Shown piece after piece: positions 34,801 through 50,018 of a stretch of DNA of 64,000 nt (position 1 is the first letter of the stretch; each line of letters opens with the position of its first letter). Source of the DNA: Oikopleura dioica. Taxonomy: Eukaryota > Animalia > Chordata. Made by a program: the position numbers and the translations under genes. Location of the stretch: assembly GCA_907165135.1 (NCBI GenBank), contig OU015566.1, positions 11,718,001 to 11,782,000 of the forward strand, written 5' to 3'. Below the pieces are notes generated by a model. It searched no databases, was not told the DNA's origin, and was given only the letters and a program-made list of their open reading frames with translations.

Positions 34801-34885
34801 ATATTATAATTATTATATATATATTATTATATATATATATATTATATATATATATATTAATAATATATATATTATAATATAATTA
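34801..34885. repeat. (TA)n-rich low-complexity tract
   Basis: Nearly pure A/T alternating sequence between the PLAC8 paralogs. Confidence 0.9.
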
Positions 34886-35087
34886 TCACAATTCCAAGAA
34901 AAAATCAAATCAGCAAATGGTATTCTAGAGACTTTTTCATTTAAATTTCGATTTCCCGCACAAATTAAGTAAAGCGTAGCTTGATAGTTTTTTTTTGATA
35001 ATTGTAAACAAATAAAGAATTTATTATTAAAATAAAGATAACATACAATAATATTTTTTCGAGCTCTTTCGGTGAGTTCTCCAAGAT

Positions 35088-35796
35088 TCAGTTCATTTGT
35101 GGAGAGGCTTGGTCAATCTGTTGTAAAGGAATCGGCTGAGTGACTACAGCCGACTGATTTGGAACAATGATGAATCGAGGATGAGTCTGAAGTTCGTGCT
35201 GGACCATAACGCAGATTTGACAGAACCAGATGGCAAGAAAATCGCTGGAAACCATCAAGTTGAACGTTTCTAATTGATGACAAAACTTACATCAAAGAAT
35301 CGCTGCGAATCCCATATTTATTTTGTATTTGCTTTCGTTGTTGGTAGATCAAGACTTTTTCGATCTTAAAAATGTTTGAATGCAACGTTGAATGCAATGG
35401 TACTAACAAGCATATCAACTGTTCCTACACATTGCAGAATCGGTGCAAAAATGATAGATTTTGTGATGATTGTGCCAGCAAAAATCGCAATCATACTGAT
35501 TTCTGCACAGGAGTAGAATGCTGTCAATGGCCTCGCTTTTGACTCGTCCAAAACTTCTTGGGTTGAGTAAAAAGTCAGGAATGAGCAAAAATATGTTTTG
35601 ATGCAAAGTCCAACATCGCAGTGGAAAAGTGAGTGACTGAAATCAGGCCTTTGGATCAATATCGGCTTTTGGCTCTCAAAAGGTGCAAATTTTTAATTTT
35701 CAAACTTCGAAAAGTAAAAATTAAGAACTGACCCTGGGTAATTACAGGTGCCATCGCACTAGGCTCTGACACAATGGGCTCGTTGTGTTCACTCAT
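35088..35796 (-). CDS. PLAC8/cornifelin-family protein, paralog B (tandem duplicate)
   Basis: MSEHNEPIVSEPS..; HCDVGLCIKTYFC; YQQRKQIQNKYGI; DFLAIWFCQICVMVQHEL. Same exon layout as paralog A. Confidence 0.75.
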
Positions 35797-35891: not shown

Positions 35892-36160
35892 TTTTTGCGA
35901 AATTAGCATTGAGAGCGAAGCTTGCCTGGCAGCAGCATTTCGAGTACGGCTGATTCCATGTAAAAGCGCGATCCATGTAAAAACTAAAGCATGTAAAAAT
36001 CGATTCCATGTAAAAACATTCTTTTACATGGATTGCATCTTTACATGGTTTCAACCGGACAAAAAAAGCTGAATTCATGTAAAAGTAATTTTTCTGAAAA
36101 AATAAATGAAACCATGTAAAATTTGTGAAAAAGATGGAATTCATGTAAATTTATTTTTTT
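35892..36160. repeat. 51-bp segment (inverted copy at 47342-47392) followed by a CATGTAAAA-motif cluster with orientation switches
   Basis: About nine CATGTAAA/TTTACATG motifs. The first 51 bp are the exact reverse complement of 47342-47392. Confidence 0.8.
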
Positions 36161-36654
36161 CAGCGGATCATCTGACTCAACCCTCAAGTTATTCGAAGTT
36201 TCGACAAGAAAGGTATGTTTCTTATGTCTTTTCTGTAACTTTTACTTCTTATTTAGTTATAAGAAGATCTTCCTGGTCCTTCAGAAGCCTCAAAGAAATT
36301 CGACTGGTTAGAAATCAAGCTACGCAATTATTAAGACAAATTCTCTTTCGTTTTTTCTGTATCTATGATCAAAATCCTTTGCTTTGTTCTTAATAAAATG
36401 TAAAAATTAACAAAAGACAATTCTTAAATTGAAGCGGAGAGTGTGGGTTACGATCCCACTAGACCGCTTTAACAAAGCTAAAGAAGTCTAATCCAAGACG
36501 CTCTCGAGTCATAACGCTTCTTCATAAAAGAAGTTGAATCAATTGTTAATTAGATTTGCAGGGAATTTTAAACAACTTTGATCATTGACCCAAAAAAACT
36601 AGAAATCATCTCTGAAATTATGGCTTCTTTTGAAAAAGAATCAGACTAGTACCT

Positions 36655-37045
36655 GTCGTCGTTGATTTTCAATAGTGTCTCGATGCTTGTCGAATGTCTT
36701 TTCAAGCTCTTCAAGCTGTTTCATCTTGAGCTACATTTTCTTCACTTGGAAATCAACAAGGACTGCAACCAGATATCTGATTTTTCTTTCTTCTTGTGAT
36801 GCAAGATGTTTTGCTTTTACAGCGGCAGAAGAAAGAGCTTCTGCGGTGGCCTTTTCGAGTTCCTCGTCGGTCATGTCTGGGTTTTCTTTCTTGGTCGGAG
36901 AAGAGCCTTTGCCTGAAACTTGATTAAAACGATCAGTTACCGCAGCGATGAGCACATTTTGGTTTCCTTTATTGTCCCTGTTCGTAATCGGCTTGTCTTC
37001 CTTGATTTTCTTCTTTGTAAAACGTCGTTGAGTTGATCTGGACCT
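36655..37045 (-). pseudogene. SMARCC: SMARCC (BAF155/170, SWI3) C-terminal coiled-coil fragment with premature stop
   Basis: [50 protein letters not shown] resembles [50 protein letters not shown]. In-frame TAG at 36731-36733. No SWIRM or SANT exons nearby. Confidence 0.85.
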
Positions 37046-37871
37046 AAATGCATAAATTATGATAAGTACTTCACAGCTTCTAGAATCGGGAGGTTGAAGT
37101 TTTGATTTTACGGTTATAACTCACTCCTAAGTTACTGGAGTCTAAAGAGATGACGAAAACTCCGGGCGAGAAGAACAAAAAGGTTGTTGAGAAAGCGAAA
37201 AAACGTGCGAAGAGAAAGCGCGATGATTTGGAAAAGATCTTTCCAGTATCTGAGCCCTTGAGCCCGCTCGAAATCGATGACATGAAGGATATGTCATCAT
37301 ATTCTAATCCGGAGGAAAAGTTCAATTAACTGACATTATCTGATAATTATTTTTCAATTTTTGTCAATTTGATTAAACTTTGAAAGCTTGTTGGCATCCA
37401 GCCTCATTCAAACTTTGGCAACATCTCATTTTACGTTCTCATACTCGGAGGCATTTTCCGGTTCTATCCGAGGAACCCGACAGACAAGGGGTCAAAGAAT
37501 ATGAACAGAATTTTTTTTTTCAGAAGATGTTGTCATCAGACCCTCAACGAACCCTTTAATTGAAGCTAAGAATCTAAGCTACAAGAAAAGATGAATTAAA
37601 AGCCTACTTTTAAGATTTTCATTGATTATTTTGATAGAAAACCAATCAGTACCCGAAAAATAGCCATTTTTATCGAATATTCGCTCTAAAATTTTTTCGC
37701 CTGACTTTAAGGGTATGGTTACAGTAGTTTTTTACGGTGAAAACGTCAAGATAGCTACAGGTTACCCAAACTCTACCTAGGTACCCTTAAGACCCCTGTA
37801 CAGACTTCAAGCGGTTTAAAACCCGCCCGGGAACGCGTCATTACGATGAGGATCATCTGTACCGATGGCGA

Positions 37872-40800
37872 TTGAATTGCAAGTGCCATCGAGGGGTTGC
37901 TGAGAAAAAAAAGGACAAGGAGAAAGGATGTGAAGATGAAAATTCTGCGGAAAAGTTTCCTATTTGCTCATGTTCGATACAAATGTACGGGTACTGTTTG
38001 GATCCCTACAACGAAGATTACTACGACCTTGATAACTGGAAACTCTTGCCGATCAAGAAGCCGCATATAAATGAAAATTACTGTCAAGTGAAGTATACTG
38101 ATATGTGGAACAAGTGGATAGGCACGAGATTATAAATAACAAATTTACCTGATGATCTTGAGGAGAAACCAGTTGACGGTAGTGGTTAATTTGATCTTCT
38201 ATCGCGCTCTAAAAATTTTCATGAGACAATTCTTAATTTTGATTCTTCAAGTAAAAATTAAAACCGTGTTATATGAGTTTGCGGGGATGTGTTTTTTATA
38301 CTGTCCTGTTTCCTGTTTTGCAGATGGTCTCAAAAAGAAATTCCTCTTCCTGTATATGACTATTAGTTATAAAAATTATTTAAATCTCTTAAAAAGCCAC
38401 GCGGATGGCAGATAACGTGACGGGCTCGACGCGGCTCAACATGAAACAATTTAAAGCTGTCATTGGAAAGAATTTTTCAACTGAAATGGATGCTGATCTT
38501 TTTAACGAAAAACGCACGACTAGAATACGACAAAACGCACAGTATCACCTTCATAAATCGATCGTTACCGATGATGAGAGCGTTGTTTGCCAAGCCTACA
38601 GAATGCAAAATTTGAGAGTTTGGTGGTGCGACCCCGTAATGGAAAAATATAGTGGCTCAGTTATGGTTCAGAAAATTGATCTACCTGTTGAAAAGTACTG
38701 TTAGTGGATAACGTTGAGCTTATGAATGTAGTCCAATCCAGAGTTGGTTAAAAAGTATACTTCATATGAGCTTCAGTGATGAAGGAATTCCGAGCCATTT
38801 CGTACTTCAATGCGCTTCAAGAATGAAGGGCGCTCTGCAGAATTTTGTAGCGCAGGGGGAAGTGCACTTTTTCCAGCTCTGGTCCAACCCCTAAAATATA
38901 TTTCTCTGAACTTATAAAAGACAATTTTTATAGGCGCAACACTGTATTTACAACTGAGTACTATTATCGACAATTGTCGCGTGCAACAACGATTTATATC
39001 GGTACCAAATAATCCCTATTGCACTCTGTAGCTTCTATATTAAGATGGCATTTTTTCGATAGCGAATAAATGTGGCGATGTCATGCAGTTGATAGTAATA
39101 TCAGAAGCCGTCAAGCATGGAGAAAATATTTTCAGAGGATTTGGCGTACCGCGTTATTATATTTTGGTTCCGAGTAAATCAAGCGATTGCTACGAACAAA
39201 TTTGGCGAGAGCTAAAGAAGAACACAAATGGAATGCCAAACTTACAGTGCATAGTTACGTAAGTACCTTTGAGATCGTTGGAGAATGAAAGGAAGCGGAC
39301 AGAATTGCGGTCGTGTGCTGGGCGAGAAGGTAGTCGGTAGTTGAACTTTCGCGTGAATCTATTCCCTTCGCAGGAGATCTGCTTCCAGAACTAGCTGCAG
39401 ATAAAATGCTGGTATGATGTTATCAACGCGTGGCTTCGCCATGTCACCTGAAATTCATCCTAAATTTCAAGTGAAAGTGTCTCTCGATTCGCTGAAATTT
39501 TCATAGAAATTGAAGGTTCTCTTCCATGATTTCAGAAATTGAAGAGCTTTCTGGTCTCGGCAGCCTGGATAGAAAACCTGGGTCAGGGACCCTGACTCAG
39601 GGTCTCAGATAATTTTAAATGAAAAGCCGCATAGCGGCTTTTTTAAGAAACGAAGCCGCATCGCGGCTTCGCCAAAATGGAATAATAGGTTGAAAATGAA
39701 TAACCGCTAAAATAAGTTTTTTTGCAAAGCCGCTTTGCGGGTTCGTTTTAAAAAAAGCCGCTACTTAAGATCTTTCGGACCCTGGCTCAGGATTTCTACA
39801 CAGGTTGCGAAGCGCAGTTCTACCTTTGTCGAAAAGAAACGGGTGCCAGGGACAAGATGGTTTCTGCCAGGCGGCGACCAAGTTGTCTAAAACGAAATAA
39901 GGGAGAACGAAGGGACCTGAAAAGCTACCGAGGATTTTGTAGATGACGCTGTTGCGAAAGAGCACATCGGGAAAGAGGACGGCCATGCGCTGTCTGTACT
40001 TCCAGAGCTCCCACTTGACGATCGCTTAGGATCGTCGCCGTCAGCTCCAGCCCGATCGGCGTGAACGTTTGAAGAAAGAATTCCCCAATGTAACCCATCA
40101 CAAATGTGGCTTTCATCAGTACCAGTCGTTTCGACGCGCAATCGGAAGATACGGCCTGCTCAGGACGTATGATCATCGATTTGACGACGATGAAGAAGCT
40201 GGCATGAAATCAAGGAAGAAAAAATCGAAAAAGTCGAAAAAATCAGATACTGGTGGAGTGTGTTCTGAGCTTAAAAAGCTCCTCTACGCAGCGCAATATT
40301 TTCCCTTGGGAACTGAGCGTATCAGAGTCGCCTATATCGACCTAATTCAGCAGCAGATTGATGGATTGAAACTCAAGGGTCAAGCTGCTGATTGGGATTC
40401 CTTCATGCGCTACTTGTTGCAAACATATTTCGCCACTGATGCTACATTCCCACCAGATTCATGGGCAGATATTTCAGCGCGGAGAATACGAAATGGCGCA
40501 GGAATGTTTAGATAAGCTCATTTGAGAACAAATTTGAAATCTTACCTTTGTAACGTTTTGTTTCCAGCTTTTTGTTGTCGCGCGCTGATGCGTTTTTCAT
40601 ACTTGTGATAGACCAATTCGATGAAGCTATCGCACCTAAAGCAGAAATCAATTCGATTGTCAGTTAATATAATTGTATGTTGAGTAATATAAGCCCTTAT
40701 TCTTGCATATAAACTAGAAAAGTTGATCAAACGAATAATATTTCCGAATCCGGAAATGCGAGCTTGCTACGGGGCGTCGAGCGAAGGCCTGATTTCGGTG

Positions 40801-41115
40801 GGCTTTGCAGTATCATTTACAACCATGGCAAACAAGCTCTATCCGATGAAATGGACTACGTGAATCATGGAAAATTGCCGCTCATGACATTGAAACGAAC
40901 TGGGTTGAAGTGGCTGGTTCAAGTTGAAGCTGTCCGTGAATTCGATAAAGGAACCGATAGGCGTTCCATAACTGACCCGATAAATATTTGCGACAATGAA
41001 TTAAAGAAGAAAATTGTTAAATGCGCATCAAAACTGTATGGCGCCGCGAATCGAGTAAAATCAATTCTCATGGAAAAAGACAAGCTCGACGCTTTTATTG
41101 CCAACCTTGACCGGG
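37872..41115 (+). mobile_element. Mutator/MULE-family DDE transposase gene (spliced, possibly interrupted)
   Basis: DGIFS..QLIVI..VPRYYILVPSKSSDCYEQIW (D at 39044), FPNVTHHKCGFH (CxxH, 40105-40116) and TNNISESGNASL (E at 40746) are MULE signature motifs. The second Asp was not resolved, and 39260-40060 contains repeats. Confidence 0.85.
39620..39770. repeat. Cluster of AAGCCGC-n3/4-GCGGCTT mini-palindromes (MITE-like insertion in the transposase gene)
   Basis: AAAAGCCGCATAGCGGCTTTT, GAAGCCGCATCGCGGCTTC and related copies. The same motif occurs at 43758 and 43919. Confidence 0.65.
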
Positions 41116-41206
41116 TAATTACCTTGAAAATAGAAGAATCGTTTCCTTTGAAATTTCATCTGCAAATCCAGTTGCTCGTTGACGTTGTAACTAAAAGAAA
41201 TTTTAG

Positions 41207-42320
41207 TCCGATAAAGTGGTTATGTCCTTTTTGGATTCTTTGGATCTGGATCTTGATGGACGAGCCCCTGAACCCATGCCAAAAAAAATTGTTGAAATCA
41301 AGGAAGAAAATATCGAAAACGCTGAATCGGAGAAGAAAGAAGACGATTTCGGTGAGAAAGTCGACTACGATGCAGGGGAAAGCGGATCAAAAATGGATAA
41401 AAAACTAATTGATTTGGAGGAAGCCGCTGATCCTGTCATCATCGTTGACGATGTTCAAGAAGAACGATTTGTGCATCTCGACGAAGCTTATTTTAATAAC
41501 GAAGACATCCAAGAGCTAAAAAAAGGAGAAACTTTCAAATTGCCGTTGAATGCAGATGACTGTCGATCGATGCTTATTGAACTGTCAACGCTTCATGAAG
41601 AACAATTACTGATTACCTATGATCGCGAAGAAATCAGACGTAAACATCTGAATGGTTTAATTGAAGGAAAAATTAAAAACTATTTGGCATATTTAGATTC
41701 CTCGAGTTCTGAGGATCATTTTGATATATATCAGTACTCCTATAAATTTTAATTCAAAAAAAAGAGGATGGGCTAGTGGACAGCCATAACATCGATTTGT
41801 TCTTTGGCTTGCTCGAAAGATATGCCAAGCAGAATAACGTTGAAGTCAAGTTTTACAACCATCTTTTCTGGTCAATTGCTATCAAGGAGATGGATTTACA
41901 GCATTTTCATCCAATCGATTTGCCAAAAAAAGCAGTTTTTCCGATGTTCGTTGATACAAAATGTAAAACAGGTCATTGGATGTTAGGAGCGGAACTCAAA
42001 AAAATTTGTTAGAAAACTCTCTCATAATGATGCTTACTTCAAGTTTCTAAAAACTAAAAATGATTTCCATGAAAGCATGTATCACAAAAGATGAAAAATG
42101 CATCGACTTTTTCTGCTCAACGAATTCAAGGAGACCCTCTATCCCGCAATTTTTCTATGGTTGGCTCGAAAAGGGTGGAATGGTCCAATCTGAATGGAAG
42201 CATAGATACAACAAAGTTGACGCACAAAAACCGAATTGTTGCGGGGTTAATGTTTCATTTTTGGGAGTCATTGTTGGTCTTTTGGGCAGGGAACACTGTT
42301 TAAACAAGGAAGAGATTTAA
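41207..42320 (+). CDS. Ulp1/SENP-like (C48) cysteine protease region with acidic linker, element-encoded
   Basis: LVDSHNIDLFFGLL..FYNHLFW..AVFP..GHWML (His at 41974)..IDFFCS..W..QKPNCCGV (nucleophile Cys). An in-frame GT-AG splice 41115->41207 links the linker to the transposase frame. Confidence 0.75.
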
Positions 42321-42940
42321 ATGTTTTCATTTACCTGGTTTATTTTTGAAGAACCGTTGAATTTGATTCGATAGACGACCATGAAAAGCTAAAAAATAAT
42401 TAATCTCTGATAAGCTCAATTATTCAGCAATCACTTTGCGAGGAAATCTTGTGGCCTGCATATTGAAAAAGAATCTTCAAATTTTCAGTTAAATCTTGTG
42501 CACTCTTCAGATTCACTTTTATCAACTCAGCGCTAGTTCCTGGCGCTTCACTTTTTATTCTTTTTATTTTAATCTTGAAGCCGCAAGCAGCTTTTCGATT
42601 TTCAAAAATTTTTGACAAATAAATTTTGATTTACTTGACTTACAAATTGACTAGAACTGGTAGATGATTGTAACGGCAAGAAGAATACCTTGATTGCTTG
42701 TGAATGAGAATTCTTGTGTTGTTGATATCTTACCGGTTCCGGATCCAATAGCACCAAGACCATCGGCCATGACTGAGAGAGCATCAATGCACATTTCTCC
42801 GAACCAAGCGGCAGTGGGGATGTATCTGAAAGCAGTAGTTAGAGGTTAATTCCTGTGGGAGGGACTCATTTAGAAGTATTATCGGTACCGCCGAATCATT
42901 TTAGGCCTTTGAAAGCTGCTCGCTCTCAAGTGAGCCGCTC

Positions 42941-43181
42941 AGAGCCGTTACAAAATTACCGGGGCAAACTTACTATTGCTCTAGCGCATAGGGGTTACAT
43001 TGACGTAGCCCAAGACATCTTTATACGGATCGATGGAGAATCTCAAGCTCTATGCCTGTATCATCTCAGATTTTCGAGATCTCAAAAATTTTCGGATTTA
43101 TGGCGATTTTTCATTTTTCAAAGGGCTACGTGTCCCTAATTCAGCCAATCACATTTGCCCCGGTAAATTTGTAACGTCTCT
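42941..43181. mobile_element. MITE, ~240 bp
   Basis: 28-bp TIRs AGAGCCGTTACAAAATTACCGGGGCAAA (42941-42968 / 43154-43181, 2 mismatches). Internal inverted ACGTAGCCC/GGGCTACGT. Possible 8-bp TSD TGAG(C/T)CGC lying 2 nt outside each end. Confidence 0.7.
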
Positions 43182-43757
43182 CATGAGTCGCGAAATTATT
43201 TAACTCTGAATGGAGCTCAAAATCCTCGTTGATTTCAGCTCGCTTTGTCTTTTTACCTTGGAAGTAGATGACGATGAGGAAAACAAGGACGGTAGCAAGG
43301 AGATTCAACAAGTGTGGCAAGTTCTATCGGTAGAAAGATTCGTTGAGCGCCTGGACATTGTCCTGCTTGGTCGCCAAAAGATGGAAGGGAGCAACGACAA
43401 CGCCTTCGAATTCAGTTCCTCGGCTGAGGTTGACGGTGGTGGGAGAAAAGGCCTTCCAGACGATGGTTTCGTAGATGTTGGTGGCGATGAAGAGGGAGAT
43501 ACCGGAGCCCAAACCGTAGCCTCTTGCGAGGAGCTTGTCGAGGAGTAGAACGATCATTCCGGCGACGAAGAGTTGGATGACGATCAAGCAGCAGATTCCA
43601 GTGCGTTTTTGAGCAGAGTCACCGTACATTGTTGTCAAAACGTTGACGACAGCCTTGCCGAGGGTCATGATCATTCCGAAGAGTTTCTTGGCGCCGGAGA
43701 AAAGAGCTCTGAAATTTAATTGTTGAAGCGATTTTCAATAAATAAGAAATTGCGCGA

Positions 43758-43936
43758 GAAGCCGCTTGCGGCTTCGAGTACCTTCAAAATAAAGCTTCGC
43801 AAAGCATGGCACTTTGTTTCTGAACTCAAAAAGCTGTGTGGAAACCTGAGTCGGGGTCCTGAAAAAGCCTAAGACAAAAGAGCCGTATTTTGCGCGGCTA
43901 ACATTTTCTATTTGACTCGAAGCCGCAAGCGGCTTC
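43758..43936. mobile_element. MITE-like element, 179 bp, in a Sec61 pseudogene intron
   Basis: Perfect 22-bp inverted repeat GAAGCCGCTTGCGGCTTCGAGT (43758-43779 / 43915-43936); each arm is itself a hairpin. No TSD identified. Confidence 0.65.
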
Positions 43937-44837
43937 TTGATTTCAAAGGGAAAGTATTTGTAAGCTTACCGTTTTTTGCTTGTGTCTCCAACTTCGATAA
44001 TTTTAGCTCCAGCGGGCAGCTGCGTTACCAAACCAGAAGTGACGATGGGAGAAATACCAAGTTCCATGAGAGTACAGTTCGATCACATCGATCTCGCCAA
44101 CACATTTACGAACCTTAATGACCACTTTGGTGACCCATTTGCATGGGTCCCATGATTCAAATTATTTTTAAAAATAGTTAAGATAAAAGAAAATAAATTT
44201 TTTGCTCGATTTTCACACAGGAAACAAAACAGGACTGGTCTGTATGGCTGGAAATAGAGTCAGATCTGCCGAAAAATACTGGGCTGTAACAAATAACAGA
44301 TTCAGAATCAAAATTCAAAATTATGAAAAAAAGGAAGGAATTTTATCAATTTGTCTTTTTCTTCTTTTTCTTCAATTTCTTCTCGATTTCCGCTCTTTCA
44401 TCAAGTGTGAGAGAATTTCGTTGAATCTGTCCATTTCTGAGTCCGACATCTGAAAAAAATAAACAATTAAGCGTTGCTTATGAGAAGGGAAACGCCAATA
44501 AAAATAAATTGTCAGTCAAAAAAGCTCTGGTATGTTTTTTCTATGAGGATGAAATTATTCTCTATTTCATGATTCTTCGCTTTTTCGAAATAAAATGAGT
44601 AACGCTCGCGAGAGTCGGGCGCGCCCACTCACGCGCGGGCGCGGCAAATTCAAAATAAATCGATGAAAAATGTCAAGAATGATCGTAGAAAGTCAGTTTT
44701 AAGGAGGGAATTGGTAATTTAACAAAAAGAAAAATTTGAGAAAAAAAAATTTTTGGCTCGGAGGGGGGTGAAAAATTCTATCAATCTGAGGCTCAATTTA
44801 ATCGTTCAATTATTTTTTTTTGGAAAAAAATCTCGAA

Positions 44838-44985
44838 ACCATGTAAAAATCAACAAAATGACTGATATCATGTAAAAACGCAAAGCATGTAAACAAAAAT
44901 ATTTGCATGCTTTGCATTTTTACATGCTTTCAATTGTTTTTCAATATTTACATGAATTCATTTTTACATGATTTACAGCAATCCC
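44838..44985. repeat. Second CATGTAAAA-motif cluster, abutting the SL/5S palindrome
   Basis: Three forward and four reverse CATG(T/C)AAA motifs; same family as 35943-36160. Confidence 0.75.
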
Positions 44986-45125
44986 CAGCATTTCGGCTGA
45001 GAAAATGCGCCCTCTATTTGCAGTAGACTATTGGCAATAGTCTATTGCGCGCTTTTCTGAAAAAATGCCGTAAATAGGAGCGTGCAGCGACAAAACGGCC
45101 TCGAAATCAAGCATCCGTATCCTTT

Positions 45126-45218
45126 ACTCATCCCATTTTTGAGTCCGATTTCGATTGTCTAACAGGTAGGAATCGTCTCCATGCCCACTCCTCCCTCCTC
45201 CTCTCGCCTCTTACAAAC
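45126..45218 (+). ncRNA. Spliced-leader (SL) RNA gene
   Basis: 45126-45165 = ACTCATCCCATTTTTGAGTCCGATTTCGATTGTCTAACAG, the 40-nt O. dioica SL exon, followed directly by a GT donor. The 3' end is estimated. Confidence 0.93.
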
Positions 45219-45450
45219 CCGGAGTCCAACTAACATTTATCAGGCAGTTCGTGCGTTCTCTTGATTGAAAGTTCACTAATCTGGAGCTTAACTATCGTCT
45301 TAAGATCTATAGATAGCATATGCGAAAGATCTTCGTTCATTCCTTTCTTACCTGACTTATGGAAATCGTATAGATACGGTATTAACCTGCAATAAAAATA
45401 ATCCTGATTAAAAAATTTGCTATATAACCTGGCTAGAACCAGCCACCTTC

Positions 45451-45570
45451 GCTTAGCGTCATACCGCGTAGAATAAACCAGTTCTCGTCCGATCACTGAA
45501 GTCAAACTACGACGGGCGGGGTTAGTACTTACATGGGTGACCGGTTGGGAATACCTCGTGCGCTAAGCAT
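45451..45570 (+). rRNA. 5S rRNA
   Basis: 120 nt with complementary ends (GCTTAGCG..CGCTAAGC) and conserved CATACC, TCTCGTCCGATC, GAAG, GGTTAGTACT, TGGGAATAC motifs. Upstream TATATAA at 45421; T-run terminator. Confidence 0.95.
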
Positions 45571-45804
45571 TTTGACTTTTTTGCAAACGAGAAGTATCTT
45601 TTTCCCTGCAGGTACACTTTTGCATTAAAAATAACACAAAACAATTGTTGAAAATCAATTCAACAGTCATTGAAAAAGTTTGCGCTCAGCAAGCATTGAG
45701 CGCTGAGTCTGGCTGGCGGGCGGCGTGGCATTTGGGAAAAAGCGCCCTCCACCGCGCGCTTTTCTGAAAAGAGGCCGAAAATAGGAGCGTGCAGCGACAA
45801 AACG

Positions 45805-45897
45805 TCCGATCAAATTTTTGAGTCCGATTTCGATTGTCTAACAGGTAAGAATCGTCTCCATGCCTTCTCTCTCCTATCCCTCTCGCCTCTCACACAC
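45805..45897 (+). ncRNA. Variant or degenerate SL RNA copy
   Basis: The last 31 nt of the leader and the GT donor are conserved. The first 9 nt are TCCGATCAA instead of ACTCATCCC, and the 28-bp promoter-proximal spacer is missing. Confidence 0.6.
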
Positions 45898-46439
45898 AAG
45901 TAAAATGACTCAAAAGCCGCGCTTTTTTCGAGGATAAGGAAGTTTTTTTTTATGGTTCCTGGATTTAATTACCCCACTTCCAACTTTTTACACCTGGAAC
46001 ATCATACAGATTTGGAATCAGCAGAAAAAATCTAGAACTCTGACCCTTTTAGGTTTCCAAAAATCACTTCCGGTTGGGATTCTAGAGCCGGAAGTTGGCG
46101 AAATTTATGAGAATGGCATGCATGTGATCTATCAAATCGAAGCTTATTTAGCTTCGATTTAATTCCTCTTTCAAGTGACTGGAAATGTTCTAAGCTTCGA
46201 TTTGATAGATCACATGCATGCCATTCTCATAAATTTCGCCAACTTCCGGCTCTAGAATCCCAACCGGAAGTGATTTTTGGAAACCTAAAAGGGTCAGAGT
46301 TCTAGATTTTTTCTGCTGATTCCAAATCTGTATGATGTTCCAGGTGTAAAAAGTTGGAAGTGGGGTAATTAAATCAAGGAACCATAAAAAAAAACTTCCT
46401 TATCCTCGAAAAAAGCGCGGCTTTTGAGTCATTTTACTT

Positions 46440-46532
46440 GTGTGTGAGAGGCGAGAGGGATAGGAGAGAGAAGGCATGGAGACGATTCTTACCTGTTAGA
46501 CAATCGAAATCGGACTCAAAAATTTGATCGGA
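46440..46532 (-). ncRNA. Variant or degenerate SL RNA copy (mirror arm)
   Basis: Reverse complement of 45805-45897. Confidence 0.6.
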
Positions 46533-46766
46533 CGTTTTGTCGCTGCACGCTCCTATTTTCGGCCTCTTTTCAGAAAAGCGCGCGGTGGAGGGCGCTTTTT
46601 CCCAAATGCCACGCCGCCCGCCAGCCAGACTCAGCGCTCAATGCTTGCTGAGCGCAAACTTTTTCAATGACTGTTGAATTGATTTTCAACAATTGTTTTG
46701 TGTTATTTTTAATGCAAAAGTGTACCTGCAGGGAAAAAGATACTTCTCGTTTGCAAAAAAGTCAAA

Positions 46767-46886
46767 ATGCTTAGCGCACGAGGTATTCCCAACCGGTCAC
46801 CCATGTAAGTACTAACCCCGCCCGTCGTAGTTTGACTTCAGTGATCGGACGAGAACTGGTTTATTCTACGCGGTATGACGCTAAGC
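46767..46886 (-). rRNA. 5S rRNA (mirror arm)
   Basis: Reverse complement of 45451-45570. Confidence 0.95.
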
Positions 46887-47118
46887 GAAGGTGGCTGGTT
46901 CTAGCCAGGTTATATAGCAAATTTTTTAATCAGGATTATTTTTATTGCAGGTTAATACCGTATCTATACGATTTCCATAAGTCAGGTAAGAAAGGAATGA
47001 ACGAAGATCTTTCGCATATGCTATCTATAGATCTTAAGACGATAGTTAAGCTCCAGATTAGTGAACTTTCAATCAAGAGAACGCACGAACTGCCTGATAA
47101 ATGTTAGTTGGACTCCGG

Positions 47119-47211
47119 GTTTGTAAGAGGCGAGAGGAGGAGGGAGGAGTGGGCATGGAGACGATTCCTACCTGTTAGACAATCGAAATCGGACTCAAAA
47201 ATGGGATGAGT
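47119..47211 (-). ncRNA. Spliced-leader (SL) RNA gene (mirror arm)
   Basis: The leader at 47172-47211 is the reverse complement of 45126-45165. Confidence 0.93.
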
Positions 47212-47587
47212 AAAGGATACGGATGCTTGATTTCGAGGCCGTTTTGTCGCTGCACGCTCCTATTTACGGCATTTTTTCAGAAAAGCGCGCAATAGACTAT
47301 TGCCAATAGTCTACTGCAAATAGAGGGCGCATTTTCTCAGCCGAAATGCTGCTGCCAGGCAAGCTTCGCTCTCAATGCTAATTTCGCAAAAATCGTGATT
47401 CTTTCGATTACTGATAGTAGTTAACGAGTTATCTCATGTGAAAATCTTCTTCTTACATTATGTACTAATAAAATGAGCAACAAAACAGATCTGATGGTAA
47501 AAATCGCTACGCATCAGGCTCGTTGTGAGTTCCTGTTAAAATTTATTCGTGAACTGTGGCAGTGGAAAAGTGAACAAAATAATTTAT

Positions 47588-50018
47588 CTAATTGGCAACA
47601 AATCGGGCGATATGTCGTCTGAAGGTAACAAAGTTCGCTAGCATGATGATGACCAAGAAGGTGAAGTACGTCTTGAACGCGAACTGCCACCATCCAGTGA
47701 GCAAGGCGAAAGCGAGAGTGATCGAGAGCCAAATGAGGACGCTCATTCGGGCCAGAAGTCTCATTTTCAGTCTTGGGTGGACGTATGCTTCGGAAATAGG
47801 GTCGAAGTGGGAAAAGATAAAGAAAAACACAGGCATTAAGAAGCCTGGAAGTTTCTCTTGAATCGTGTCCCATTTTTCGCTCTAAGAAAACCTGTTTTAA
47901 TCATGGAGAATAGTCTCTTTACCTGTGAAGAAAGGTGCGAGAGTTTGACAAGAGGGGATACGAGCGGGTAAAATTCGTCCATTCGAACTGGATCTTCAAA
48001 GTCTGGGTCGGACCAGTGCGCGATGTCGAGTTGATATTTGCCAGTCATCACCTAATCGAAATAAAAAGGGATCTCGTCAGAAAGAATTTAAACCTGCTGT
48101 CGTCCTAAGTCGGTCAATGTCGCATTGAAGCCTGGTAGCTTGATGTGATCCGGGATAGACTGGTTTTTCACTTGTCTTTGCGCGCTCAAAGCTTCCAACT
48201 CGTGGCTCATGCCGTGCGTTTTGGCCAGATTGATCGCAGAAATTTGGAGTGTGTCGACGATTCGCTCGATTTGACGGTGCTCTTGTGTCACTCCTTCGGG
48301 GCCGAAGAATGTCGCTTCCATCCAGTTTTGCTTGTTTCCCGTCTGAACGTTTGTTTATTCATTGATTCATAAAAGTAACTATTTACCATTAGCTTGTCCA
48401 TCATGTCTCGATTCGCCACGTGAATGGTTCTGATCAACTCTTGTGCGAGTCGATCATTTTCTTCCAGTTCAGTTTCTTGGTTCAATCGACGGGAGGCAAA
48501 AGATGTCTCGTGCTCTTTTGTTTCGTTGATCATTTGTAAAAGACTTTCTTGCGCGAAAATCCAAGCTATTCGGTGAAGTCCCTAAGGGAAAATTAACTAG
48601 TGGAGATGAAGAATGGATAAATTTACTCTTGCATTTGTAGAGCGCTTGATATCGAGTCGAAGGAATCGTCTGTACGCGTCATTAAGATTCTTGGTGTAGC
48701 AATCAATGTTTCGTTTCACAAAGGGTGCCCACTCTTCGCAAGTTTCGGGGTCAAGCCTTTTCGATTCTGACTTGTATCTCCAGGGCTGAATGTAAGACAG
48801 CCAGGCTTCATAAACAATCCGGAAAGTGTTATCCAGCGGCCACAATTCGAAACAGATTCGGAAAATGCGCGGAAGAGATGGTTCCATGTAGTGTGTCAAG
48901 ATTTCGTTGGAAATCTTCGCTTGAACTGTTGGCTTTTCATTTTGCTTGGCAAAGTCGGTGAAAGAAATTTCGTTGGAGGAATTGTTCTTGAGCAGACTGC
49001 CGCCGCAGCTGTGTATGTGTTTGATCATCGTGCGGAGGGCGCGAATTTGGTCTTGATTTGGGCAGATTTTGTCTTGGACGTCGAGGAGCTTTTCGCTCAT
49101 GATCAGGATGAAGGTTTCTGAGCGCCAGGTTTGACCGGGATGGGGACGCTCAATCAGGGAAGTCTGAAAAGGGAGGTCATTGATACTTTTTGAAGACAAT
49201 GAGAAGAACTTACGCTTGAAGATGCAAGTGGTCGTTTTAGGACAGAGCTTGTCCTGTGAGGAGTTCTTGGCGATGGAAGAGTTGGCGCTCCAATAAGGGA
49301 TTGTTTCTCAATGGGGAGGATCCCATCAACGGGGATAAAGTACTCAAGATAACTGGCAAAGAGACTGAAACGCCTGTAAGAAATCGGGCGTATGATTAAA
49401 ACTTACTGATGGATAACATGATCATCCGGCGTGTAAGAGTCGAAGGTAACATTCGAATGCTTCTTTGTAGTGATTTTGTGGACAATCAAGTTATCAACAA
49501 TAAACGCGGCAAAACGGTAGAAAAAGTACTCGAAAGCAGTGACGCTGATTTCATTGCCTTCCACTTCTTTGGTCCTGTTTTTGCACAAAAACTGAAGTAA
49601 TTCTTTAAATAAAGCCGGGGAGATAATTCTACTTTTTTGGGAAGTGAGTAGCGCAGGAAGGGATCTGACTGTAGCTTGTTGATATTTTCGAAAAGAGATC
49701 CGTTTGGCCGCATAAATTTCATAATCGCCGCAAATTCTTTTTCCTTCTTCTACAATTCGGGTTAATACAAAAATTGGAATCGGAAAATCAGATCTTACTG
49801 ATGTTATGTCGAACAATCCGAATTTCTCGGTCGAGAAAAGTTTTTCGATCAGTTCTGCGTACTCATTGTGAATTCCTTTGTACGAGTATTTATCCAGGAT
49901 CGCCGAGGTTTCCTCTTATAAAGGTTTTAATGAGTGAAACATGGATTGTTACTTTACCTAATCGCTCAATGAGCTCTTTCGCCTTTTCGGCTTTTTGCAA
50001 TTTCTCTTTCAAACTCAT
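47588..50018 (-). CDS. SMPD4: Sphingomyelin phosphodiesterase 4 (neutral sphingomyelinase-3) homolog
   Basis: AFEYFFYRFAAF, VYEAWLSYIQPWRY and DPDFEDPVRMDEF..LV motifs, plus C-terminal TM segments. Confidence 0.85.

Follow-up and report, generated by a model that had tools for sequence, protein, structure and literature searches.

A probable Mutator-type transposon with host-gene cargo in one arm of a 5S rRNA/SL RNA palindrome of Oikopleura dioica

The 5S rRNA and spliced-leader (SL) RNA genes of Oikopleura dioica reportedly lie in inverted-repeat loci, which Ganot et al. are said to have described in 2004. In the Okinawa assembly of this species, 27 5S/SL copies were counted, 22 of them in inverted pairs, on all chromosomal scaffolds but the Y-specific region (PMC8008620). 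The locus studied here lies in a window of 64,000 nucleotides (C4:11718001-11782000) of a 64.28-Mb, 19-contig genome, the whole of which was searched; C1, C2 and so on denote its contigs, and positions without a contig name are those of the window. It belongs to the group of 5S/SL inverted-repeat loci, with an SL gene, a 5S gene and a second SL-like gene in each arm. It differs from the other loci in that one arm is interrupted by a 9-kb insert, which we propose to be a transposon of the Mutator-like element (MULE) superfamily.

MULEs duplicate 8-11 bp of target DNA, typically 9, can carry long terminal inverted repeats (TIRs) with internal repeats, and were almost absent from chordates in a survey of the superfamily (PMC6446971). 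The TIRs of the superfamily often reach 100 bp or more and contain repeats to which the transposase binds. Like maize MuDR and Aedes Muta1, the insert combines a target-site duplication (TSD) of 9-10 bp, ~115-bp TIRs with repeated subterminal motifs, a putative DDE transposase homologous via paralogs to Pfam MULE/Transposase_mut, and a position near the 5' side of a gene. It differs from them in TIRs that are ~68% identical, in a transposase divided into many short exons that fall below Pfam thresholds, and in its chordate host. A further parallel is offered by Pack-MULEs, described in rice and other plants (Jiang et al. 2004, as cited in PMC6446971), since there too MULE ends and a TSD enclose DNA-level copies of pieces of several unlinked host genes, which retain introns and whose parents are intact elsewhere. 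Classical Pack-MULEs, however, have no transposase and form large families, whereas the element described here is single-copy and retains exons for a transposase and a Ulp1-like domain, which may be broken. The literature searched contained no paper on MULEs in O. dioica.

A first-pass annotation of this DNA had proposed a single composite element of ~11.5 kb, bounded by a 51-bp exact inverted repeat and carrying a captured SL/5S cassette that it could disperse. The inverted repeat is real, as 35892-35942 is the exact reverse complement of 47342-47392. Its interpretation changes when the palindrome is examined as a whole. Joined to 44996-46146, the left 51 nt give a sequence of 1202 nt that is the reverse complement of 46191-47392 with one mismatch (45961 vs 46376). 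In the reverse complement of the right arm, the 51-mer and the remainder of the arm are contiguous. On the left, these 51 nt give way to unrelated sequence, and only 9 kb further on, at 44986, does the arm continue, beginning with the last 10 nt of the 51-mer again. The left 51-mer is host DNA, namely the outermost part of the left arm of the palindrome, severed by the insertion. The right arm is a built-in empty site for this insertion, displaying the target in its single-copy state. The true element extends from 35942/3 to 44985, and the SL and 5S genes are outside it and are not mobilised by it. The genome contains only two copies of the 51-mer, both at this locus; mapped genome-wide, it does not recur at other element ends. 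The first-pass annotation had itself considered that the 51-mer might be ordinary upstream sequence of 5S/SL repeats, and this is what was found in modified form: it is the upstream flank of one locus and is unique to that locus.

A perfect 10-nt direct repeat, CAGCATTTCG, flanks the insert at 35933-35942 and 44986-44995, and the two inverted-repeat pairs correspondingly share 10 nt on the right arm (47342-47351). The chance of a 10-nt match at exactly that position is ~4^-10, or about one in a million. If G35942 is counted in the insert, the duplication is 9 bp (CAGCATTTC) and the insert 9,044 bp; otherwise the duplication is CAGCATTTC(G) and the insert 9,043 bp. The 9-bp reading is compatible with a copy of the left end on C3, described below, where similarity likewise begins GAGTACGG. 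Either length falls within the 8-11 bp of MULEs. No 9-bp TSD had been reported in the first-pass annotation, and indeed none exists outside the 51-mers, where the flanks read AAGAAGATT and TCGTGATTC. The duplication at the 35942/3 and 44985 borders was overlooked because it had been sought outside the 51-mers.

Both tips of the insert carry copies of the motif CATGTAAA. The window holds 16 matches to this motif against 2.65 expected, a number reached in none of 100 shuffles, and 15 of them fall in two clusters (35957-36149 and 44840-44970) that lie inward of the 51-mers, as had been noted before. The first motif starts at nt 16 from either tip. The motif order is also mirrored, with, on reading inward from either tip, 3-4 motifs in one orientation and then 2-3 in the opposite one. 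Aligned as an inverted repeat, the tips are identical at 81 of 120 positions; the score of 76 is ~10 standard deviations above that of shuffled sequences (mean 17.8, standard deviation 5.9, maximum 41), and the repeats are ~115 bp long and imperfect. We infer that the CATGTAAA motifs may be transposase-binding sites.

A double CATGTAAA, with 7-10 nt between the copies, occurs at only four places in the genome: both ends of the insert, C3:2254320-2254377 and C3:1880455. The left 230 bp of the insert have a 92% identical copy at C3:2254167-2254391, in which the similarity starts at the same boundary base and the outer flank is unrelated to the 51-mer. In addition, 75 nt of the right subterminal region have a match at C3:2229047-2229122, with the relative orientation preserved. 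These matches hint at a candidate sibling bloated to ~25 kb, at C3:2229047-2254391. Within ~8-9 kb of the C3 end copy, neither a transposase nor a partner end was found.

The coding content of the insert was examined by searching the transposase and Ulp1 exons singly. Pieces of open reading frames (ORFs), both start-to-stop and stop-to-stop, were tested against Pfam, with cut-offs of 21 bits for Transposase_mut and 27.6 bits for MULE, and the genome was scanned with the families PF10551 and PF02902. The ORF pieces yielded neither a MULE nor a Peptidase_C48 match, and the two scans gave matches elsewhere and none at the studied locus. The MULE transposase and Ulp1 domain of the first-pass annotation have no direct Pfam match, but they gain indirect support from paralogs and, for Ulp1, also from a protein atlas. 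Exon 39044-39259 is 36-37% identical to C3:1606091-1606300 (genome-wide E 1.1e-10), where the ORF scores 22.6 bits with Transposase_mut and 25 bits with MULE. Exon 40030-40512 matches C3:1608856-1609104 (E 1.6e-9), and exon 40713-41405 matches both a four-copy family on C1, C4 and C5 (E ~1e-26, 39% identity) and C3:1609376-1609792 (E 2e-18). Taken together, the matched ORFs of the relatives reach 22.6 bits with Transposase_mut, above the cut-off, and 25-26 bits with MULE (E ~1e-5), below it. The alignment with the relatives includes the DG.F start and the C.FH motif; the next exon contributes TNN.SES.N, a motif type that presumably bears the catalytic Glu in the MULE superfamily.

Between IVT (ending at 39259) and KKEFPNV (starting at 40072), the relatives encode ~10 residues beginning S-D-W-E. 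In the studied copy this position is occupied by repeat DNA, of which 39272-39467 is 90% identical to C1:12275911 and 39478-40068 is 82% identical to C2:520697, a member of a dispersed repeat. The consensus donor GTAAGT at 39259 provides no in-frame GT-AG join across 39260-40071. A weaker GT at 39254, combined with the AG at 40050, would give an in-frame join and would supply an Asp. We lean towards a transposase core that is interrupted at the S-D-W-E position and broken. The studied copy is probably no longer autonomous, because its catalytic core appears interrupted where the relatives have this segment.

The four-copy MULE family (C1:16972300-16975926, C4:7644534-7646340, C4:9117288-9119090 and C5:12173221-12175029) gives identical scores to the same queries, so its copies on C1, C4 (two) and C5 would be near-identical to each other. 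It has the superfamily in common with the studied element. However, the amino-acid identity between them is ~33-47%, and the CATGTAAA end arrays are unique to the family of the studied element. The latter represents a separate, low-copy, older and decayed MULE family, and its distinctive feature is its landing site. Relatives of the transposase, and ORFs combining MULE with Peptidase_C48, are numerous on C3, for example at C3:1036000-1044500 (L057), C3:1603000-1612500 (L059) and C3:2847000-2855500 (L058). This contig looks like a reservoir of MULE/Ulp1 elements.

Among the MULEs that carry Ulp1 are KI-MULE/Kaonashi of Arabidopsis and CUMULE of melon. As in these, a probable C48/Ulp1-like domain lies downstream of the transposase and in the same orientation. 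In contrast to them, its C48 assignment comes through a paralog and the protein atlas, and the half with the catalytic Cys is recognised at the motif level only. When a 231-aa transposase piece was compared with 1.84 billion representatives (HMMER), the only match was P0001, the 314-aa public gene model of the studied locus, to which the transposase exons at 40072-41405 contribute. A Pfam search of P0001 gave no match. In the atlas, its residues 200-314 are nearest to Peptidase_C48 clusters (0.91, 0.88 and 0.88), and the atlas model of residues 214-314 has a TM (template modelling) score of 0.63 against an Ulp1 (Peptidase_C48) cluster. The same stretch aligns to the ORF of the closest paralog (L059; BLASTP 4e-5), in the part that has a weak C48 match. 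More distant C3 relatives have clear Peptidase_C48 matches (30-33 bits), and these share one ORF with the transposase C-terminus. In the second half of the region (42051-42317), NCCGV aligns with the catalytic-Cys motif NNCG of the paralogs, without significance and at the motif level only; this half has no useful genome paralog, no atlas match and no significant profile match. A Ulp1-like domain is, in our view, likely to be present, and the transposase is probably fused to it or followed by it.

The host-gene fragments recognised earlier were borne out. The Pfam SWIRM-assoc_1 match confirms the SMARCC fragment, which shares 88% identity with C1:13646633-13646924 and is interrupted by a stop at a position that is open in the parent. 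The broken Sec61-alpha copy is confirmed by its SecY match, its intron sequence and its internal deletion. The blocks 42653-42831, 43211-43726 and 43965-44075 are 91%, 89% and 86% identical to C5:4110162-4111688, colinear and with intron sequence included, and ~670 bp of the parent are deleted internally. Both parents were located elsewhere and are intact, SMARCC on C1 with SWIRM and SWIRM-assoc_1/2/3 domains and SEC61A on C5 with Plug and SecY domains. The ratio of nonsynonymous to synonymous substitutions between fragment and parent (Ka/Ks) is 0.23 for SMARCC (Ks 0.36) and 0.41 for SEC61A (Ks 0.19); one neutral and one constrained lineage would give such values. Further fragments are found at 36157-36278 (80% identical to C2:9390887), 39272-39467 and 40532-40627 (90%), and the interior combines fragments of at least 6 loci in a mosaic. 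As with Pack-MULEs, the cargo appears to be a product of DNA-level copying.

The earlier description as a Pack-MULE with host-gene fragments thus stands with respect to a Mutator-type element with captured fragments, but not with respect to its boundaries or its SL/5S cargo. The features of a MULE are found, namely the TSD, the TIRs and evidence of transposition. A Pack-MULE in the strict sense has no transposase gene, whereas transposase exons are present here at 39044-41405. The element is Pack-MULE-like, not a strict-sense Pack-MULE.

We propose, with a probability of roughly 0.85, that a cut-and-paste Mutator (MULE) transposon with host-gene cargo inserted in the left arm of a pre-existing 5S/SL palindrome. 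A MULE of 9,043 bp (35942/3-44985) would have entered the outer left arm of the existing 5S rRNA/SL RNA palindrome, and the staggered cut in the target would have led to the duplication of 9-10 bp, CAGCATTTC(G). Although host DNA, the 51 nt displaced from the arm would then mimic the TIR of a larger unit. The real ends of the element would be the ~115-bp imperfect inverted repeats with CATGTAAA motifs. Its interior would comprise a multi-exon MULE transposase, the Ulp1-like domain, DNA-level pieces of SMARCC, SEC61A and at least 3 other loci, and small nested repeats. No difference has yet arisen between the displaced 51 nt and their partner, whereas the SEC61A and SMARCC cargo has diverged by 9-14% from the parents. 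Because of this difference, the insertion would be younger than the capture, with the fragments carried in, if no arm-to-arm conversion took place. Capture thus seems to have preceded insertion, with gene conversion as a caveat.

Several observations weigh against this proposal. A full second copy of the insert was not found genome-wide, and its mobility is read from one insertion and one extra end copy. The two TIRs agree at only ~68% of positions. The right end is without a further copy, and the TSD and symmetry alone fix where it terminates. The element's own exons fall below every Pfam MULE and Peptidase_C48 threshold, so that the family assignment is a chain of homology. Finally, gene conversion between the arms is possible, and the perfect 51-mer cannot strictly date the insertion. 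The mosaic interior and the essentially single-copy nature of the element would also fit a different origin, in which a 9-kb patchwork was assembled by microhomology or template-switch repair of a break in the arm, palindromes being fragile, and the 10-bp repeat was a by-product of the repair. We consider such an origin improbable. It does not account for ends that form significant inverted repeats with mirrored motif arrays equidistant from the tips, for the recurrence of one end on C3 with the same boundary, or for the transposase homologs inside, and the clean 9-10-bp direct duplication fits the TSD length of MULEs.

The composite 11.5-kb MULE (35892-47392), with the 51-mers as perfect TIRs and the SL/5S cassette captured and dispersible, is very improbable. 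The 51-mers do form a perfect inverted pair with CATGTAAA clusters inward of both, and long TIRs with internal repeats are known in MULEs (PMC6446971). Nevertheless, this reading has neither a TSD outside the 51-mers nor another genomic copy of the 51-mer, which is contiguous with the right arm and, when joined to the left arm, restores it. It would also require a perfect 51-nt outer TIR followed by an inner TIR of ~68% identity. The C3 end copy stops exactly at the inner boundary, without the 51-mer. Moreover, the other 5S/SL copies show no similarity to the right-end flank of the element or to its CATGTAAA clusters, and the element ends match only C3. Very little probability likewise attaches to an assembly artefact, in which the palindrome or its junctions would stem from nanopore fold-back or mis-joining. 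Arms that are 99.9% identical around a 44-nt spacer are what chimeric fold-back reads can mimic, yet inverted 5S/SL pairs are documented in O. dioica (22 of 27 copies; PMC8008620) and recur here on four contigs, and an artefact would yield neither a precise TSD nor an arm split 51 nt from its end.

Our search for 5S/SL matches gave inverted pairs on C1, C2, C4 and C5 and no copy on the 2.9-Mb contig C3. Since the Y-specific region in PMC8008620 is likewise without 5S/SL copies, C3 is probably the Y-specific region. A more far-reaching scenario is chordate capture and transport of the Pack-MULE type, in which the family persists on the male-specific C3, is mobilised in trans into autosomal or pseudoautosomal sites and favours the open promoter regions of RNA polymerase III/SL RNA genes, with the cargo carried in. 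We regard this as tentative and rather doubtful. The results remove the idea of a transposon spreading the trans-splicing and 5S genes of Oikopleura, and replace it with an internally controlled insertion, for which the second palindrome arm provides the empty site. They also add to a chordate genome what is probably a distinct low-copy Mutator family with host-gene cargo. The insertion point lies 51 nt inside the left arm, counted from its outer end, and 140 bp upstream of the outer SL RNA gene of that arm. As the arms are otherwise identical, comparing them could show whether the insertion has an effect on SL/5S expression or on palindrome stability.

Table 1. Features of the interrupted palindrome and of the insert, in window positions
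Feature	Position	Strand	Basis or remarks
MULE-type DNA transposon (probable), 9,043 bp	35943-44985	+	direct repeat flanks; other arm is the empty site
Displaced outer 51 nt of left arm (target DNA, not TIR)	35892-35942	.	
TSD copy 1	35933-35941/2	.	last 9-10 nt of displaced 51-mer
Left terminal/subterminal region, 9 CATGTAAA motifs	35943-36172	+	motif map; C3 copy
SMARCC fragment, part of one exon, premature stop	36630-36921	-	Pfam SWIRM-assoc_1, E 1.5e-10
Foreign fragment	37513-37720	.	92% identical to C1:8661677 and C5:6238773
Putative transposase exon, first part of MULE catalytic core (starts DGIF, ends IVT)	39044-39259	+	
Unrelated repeat DNA, 0.8 kb (812 nt), at position of relatives' S-D-W-E segment	39260-40071	.	
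Putative transposase exons: KCGFH motif, then TNNISESGN (putative catalytic E) region and C-terminal part	40072-41405	+	
Probable Ulp1 (C48)-like protease domain, two exons, GHW and NCCGV motifs	41746-42317	+	
SEC61A fragment, three blocks, introns retained, truncated at both ends	42653-44075	-	Pfam SecY
Nested repeat resembling a miniature inverted-repeat transposable element (MITE), 247 bp, 28-nt TIRs (93% complementary), in gap of SEC61A fragment	42937-43183	.	
Right terminal/subterminal region, 6 CATGTAAA motifs	44816-44985	-	imperfect inverted repeat of left end
TSD copy 2, first 10 nt of remaining left arm	44986-44995	.	
Remaining left palindrome arm	44996-46146	+	SL exon 45126-45165, 5S 45451-45569, variant SL exon ~45805-45844
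Intact right palindrome arm, 1202 nt, paralogous empty site	46191-47392	-	

Small repeats are nested in the interior of the insert. The MITE-like repeat has at least 15 genomic copies of 85-92% identity, on C1, C3, C4, C5 and C7. At 43757-43937, in an enlarged intron of the SEC61A fragment, a 23-nt sequence and its perfect inverted copy are separated by 135 nt; together with a related 40-nt segment at 42562-42601, this pair may represent another small nested element. Among the transposase exons, 38776-38886 is a dispersed repeat of ~100 bp with at least 10 copies on several contigs (87-90% identity). The segment 39575-39808 belongs to a palindromic dispersed repeat family that matches on both strands at many loci, with clusters at C2:519-523 kb, 680-684 kb and 749-750 kb.

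The palindrome itself comprises the near-perfect pair 44986-46146 / 46191-47351 with a 44-nt spacer, and once the displaced 51 nt are added the full arm length is 1202 nt, not 1161. Its locus-specific part is the outer ~390 nt, including the 51-mer and with the exception of the SL gene itself. Each arm has a 40-nt exon followed by GT, and the left-arm exon (45126-45165) is one that we take to be the O. dioica spliced leader. The SL sequence was looked for in PMC7986045 and was not found there. The 5S rRNA genes at 45451-45569 (+) and 46768-46886 (-) score 97 bits with Rfam on both arms.

The PLAC8 and SMPD4 neighbours named by the first-pass annotation were also recovered, as a PLAC8-like gene at 35366-35659 and an SMPD4-like gene at 48597-49199, both on the minus strand. 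An AT-rich palindromic microsatellite lies between PLAC8-like exons, at 34808-34893. Within the palindrome, the second SL-like gene of each arm (45805-45897 and its mirror 46440-46532) is 85% identical to the first; its splice-donor context is unchanged, and the first ~12 nt of its exon differ. Each SL copy has its own version of a 54-nt upstream block (45047-45100 vs 45754-45807, 93% identical). The sole mismatch between the 1202-nt arms, 45961 / 46376, is usable as an arm-specific marker.

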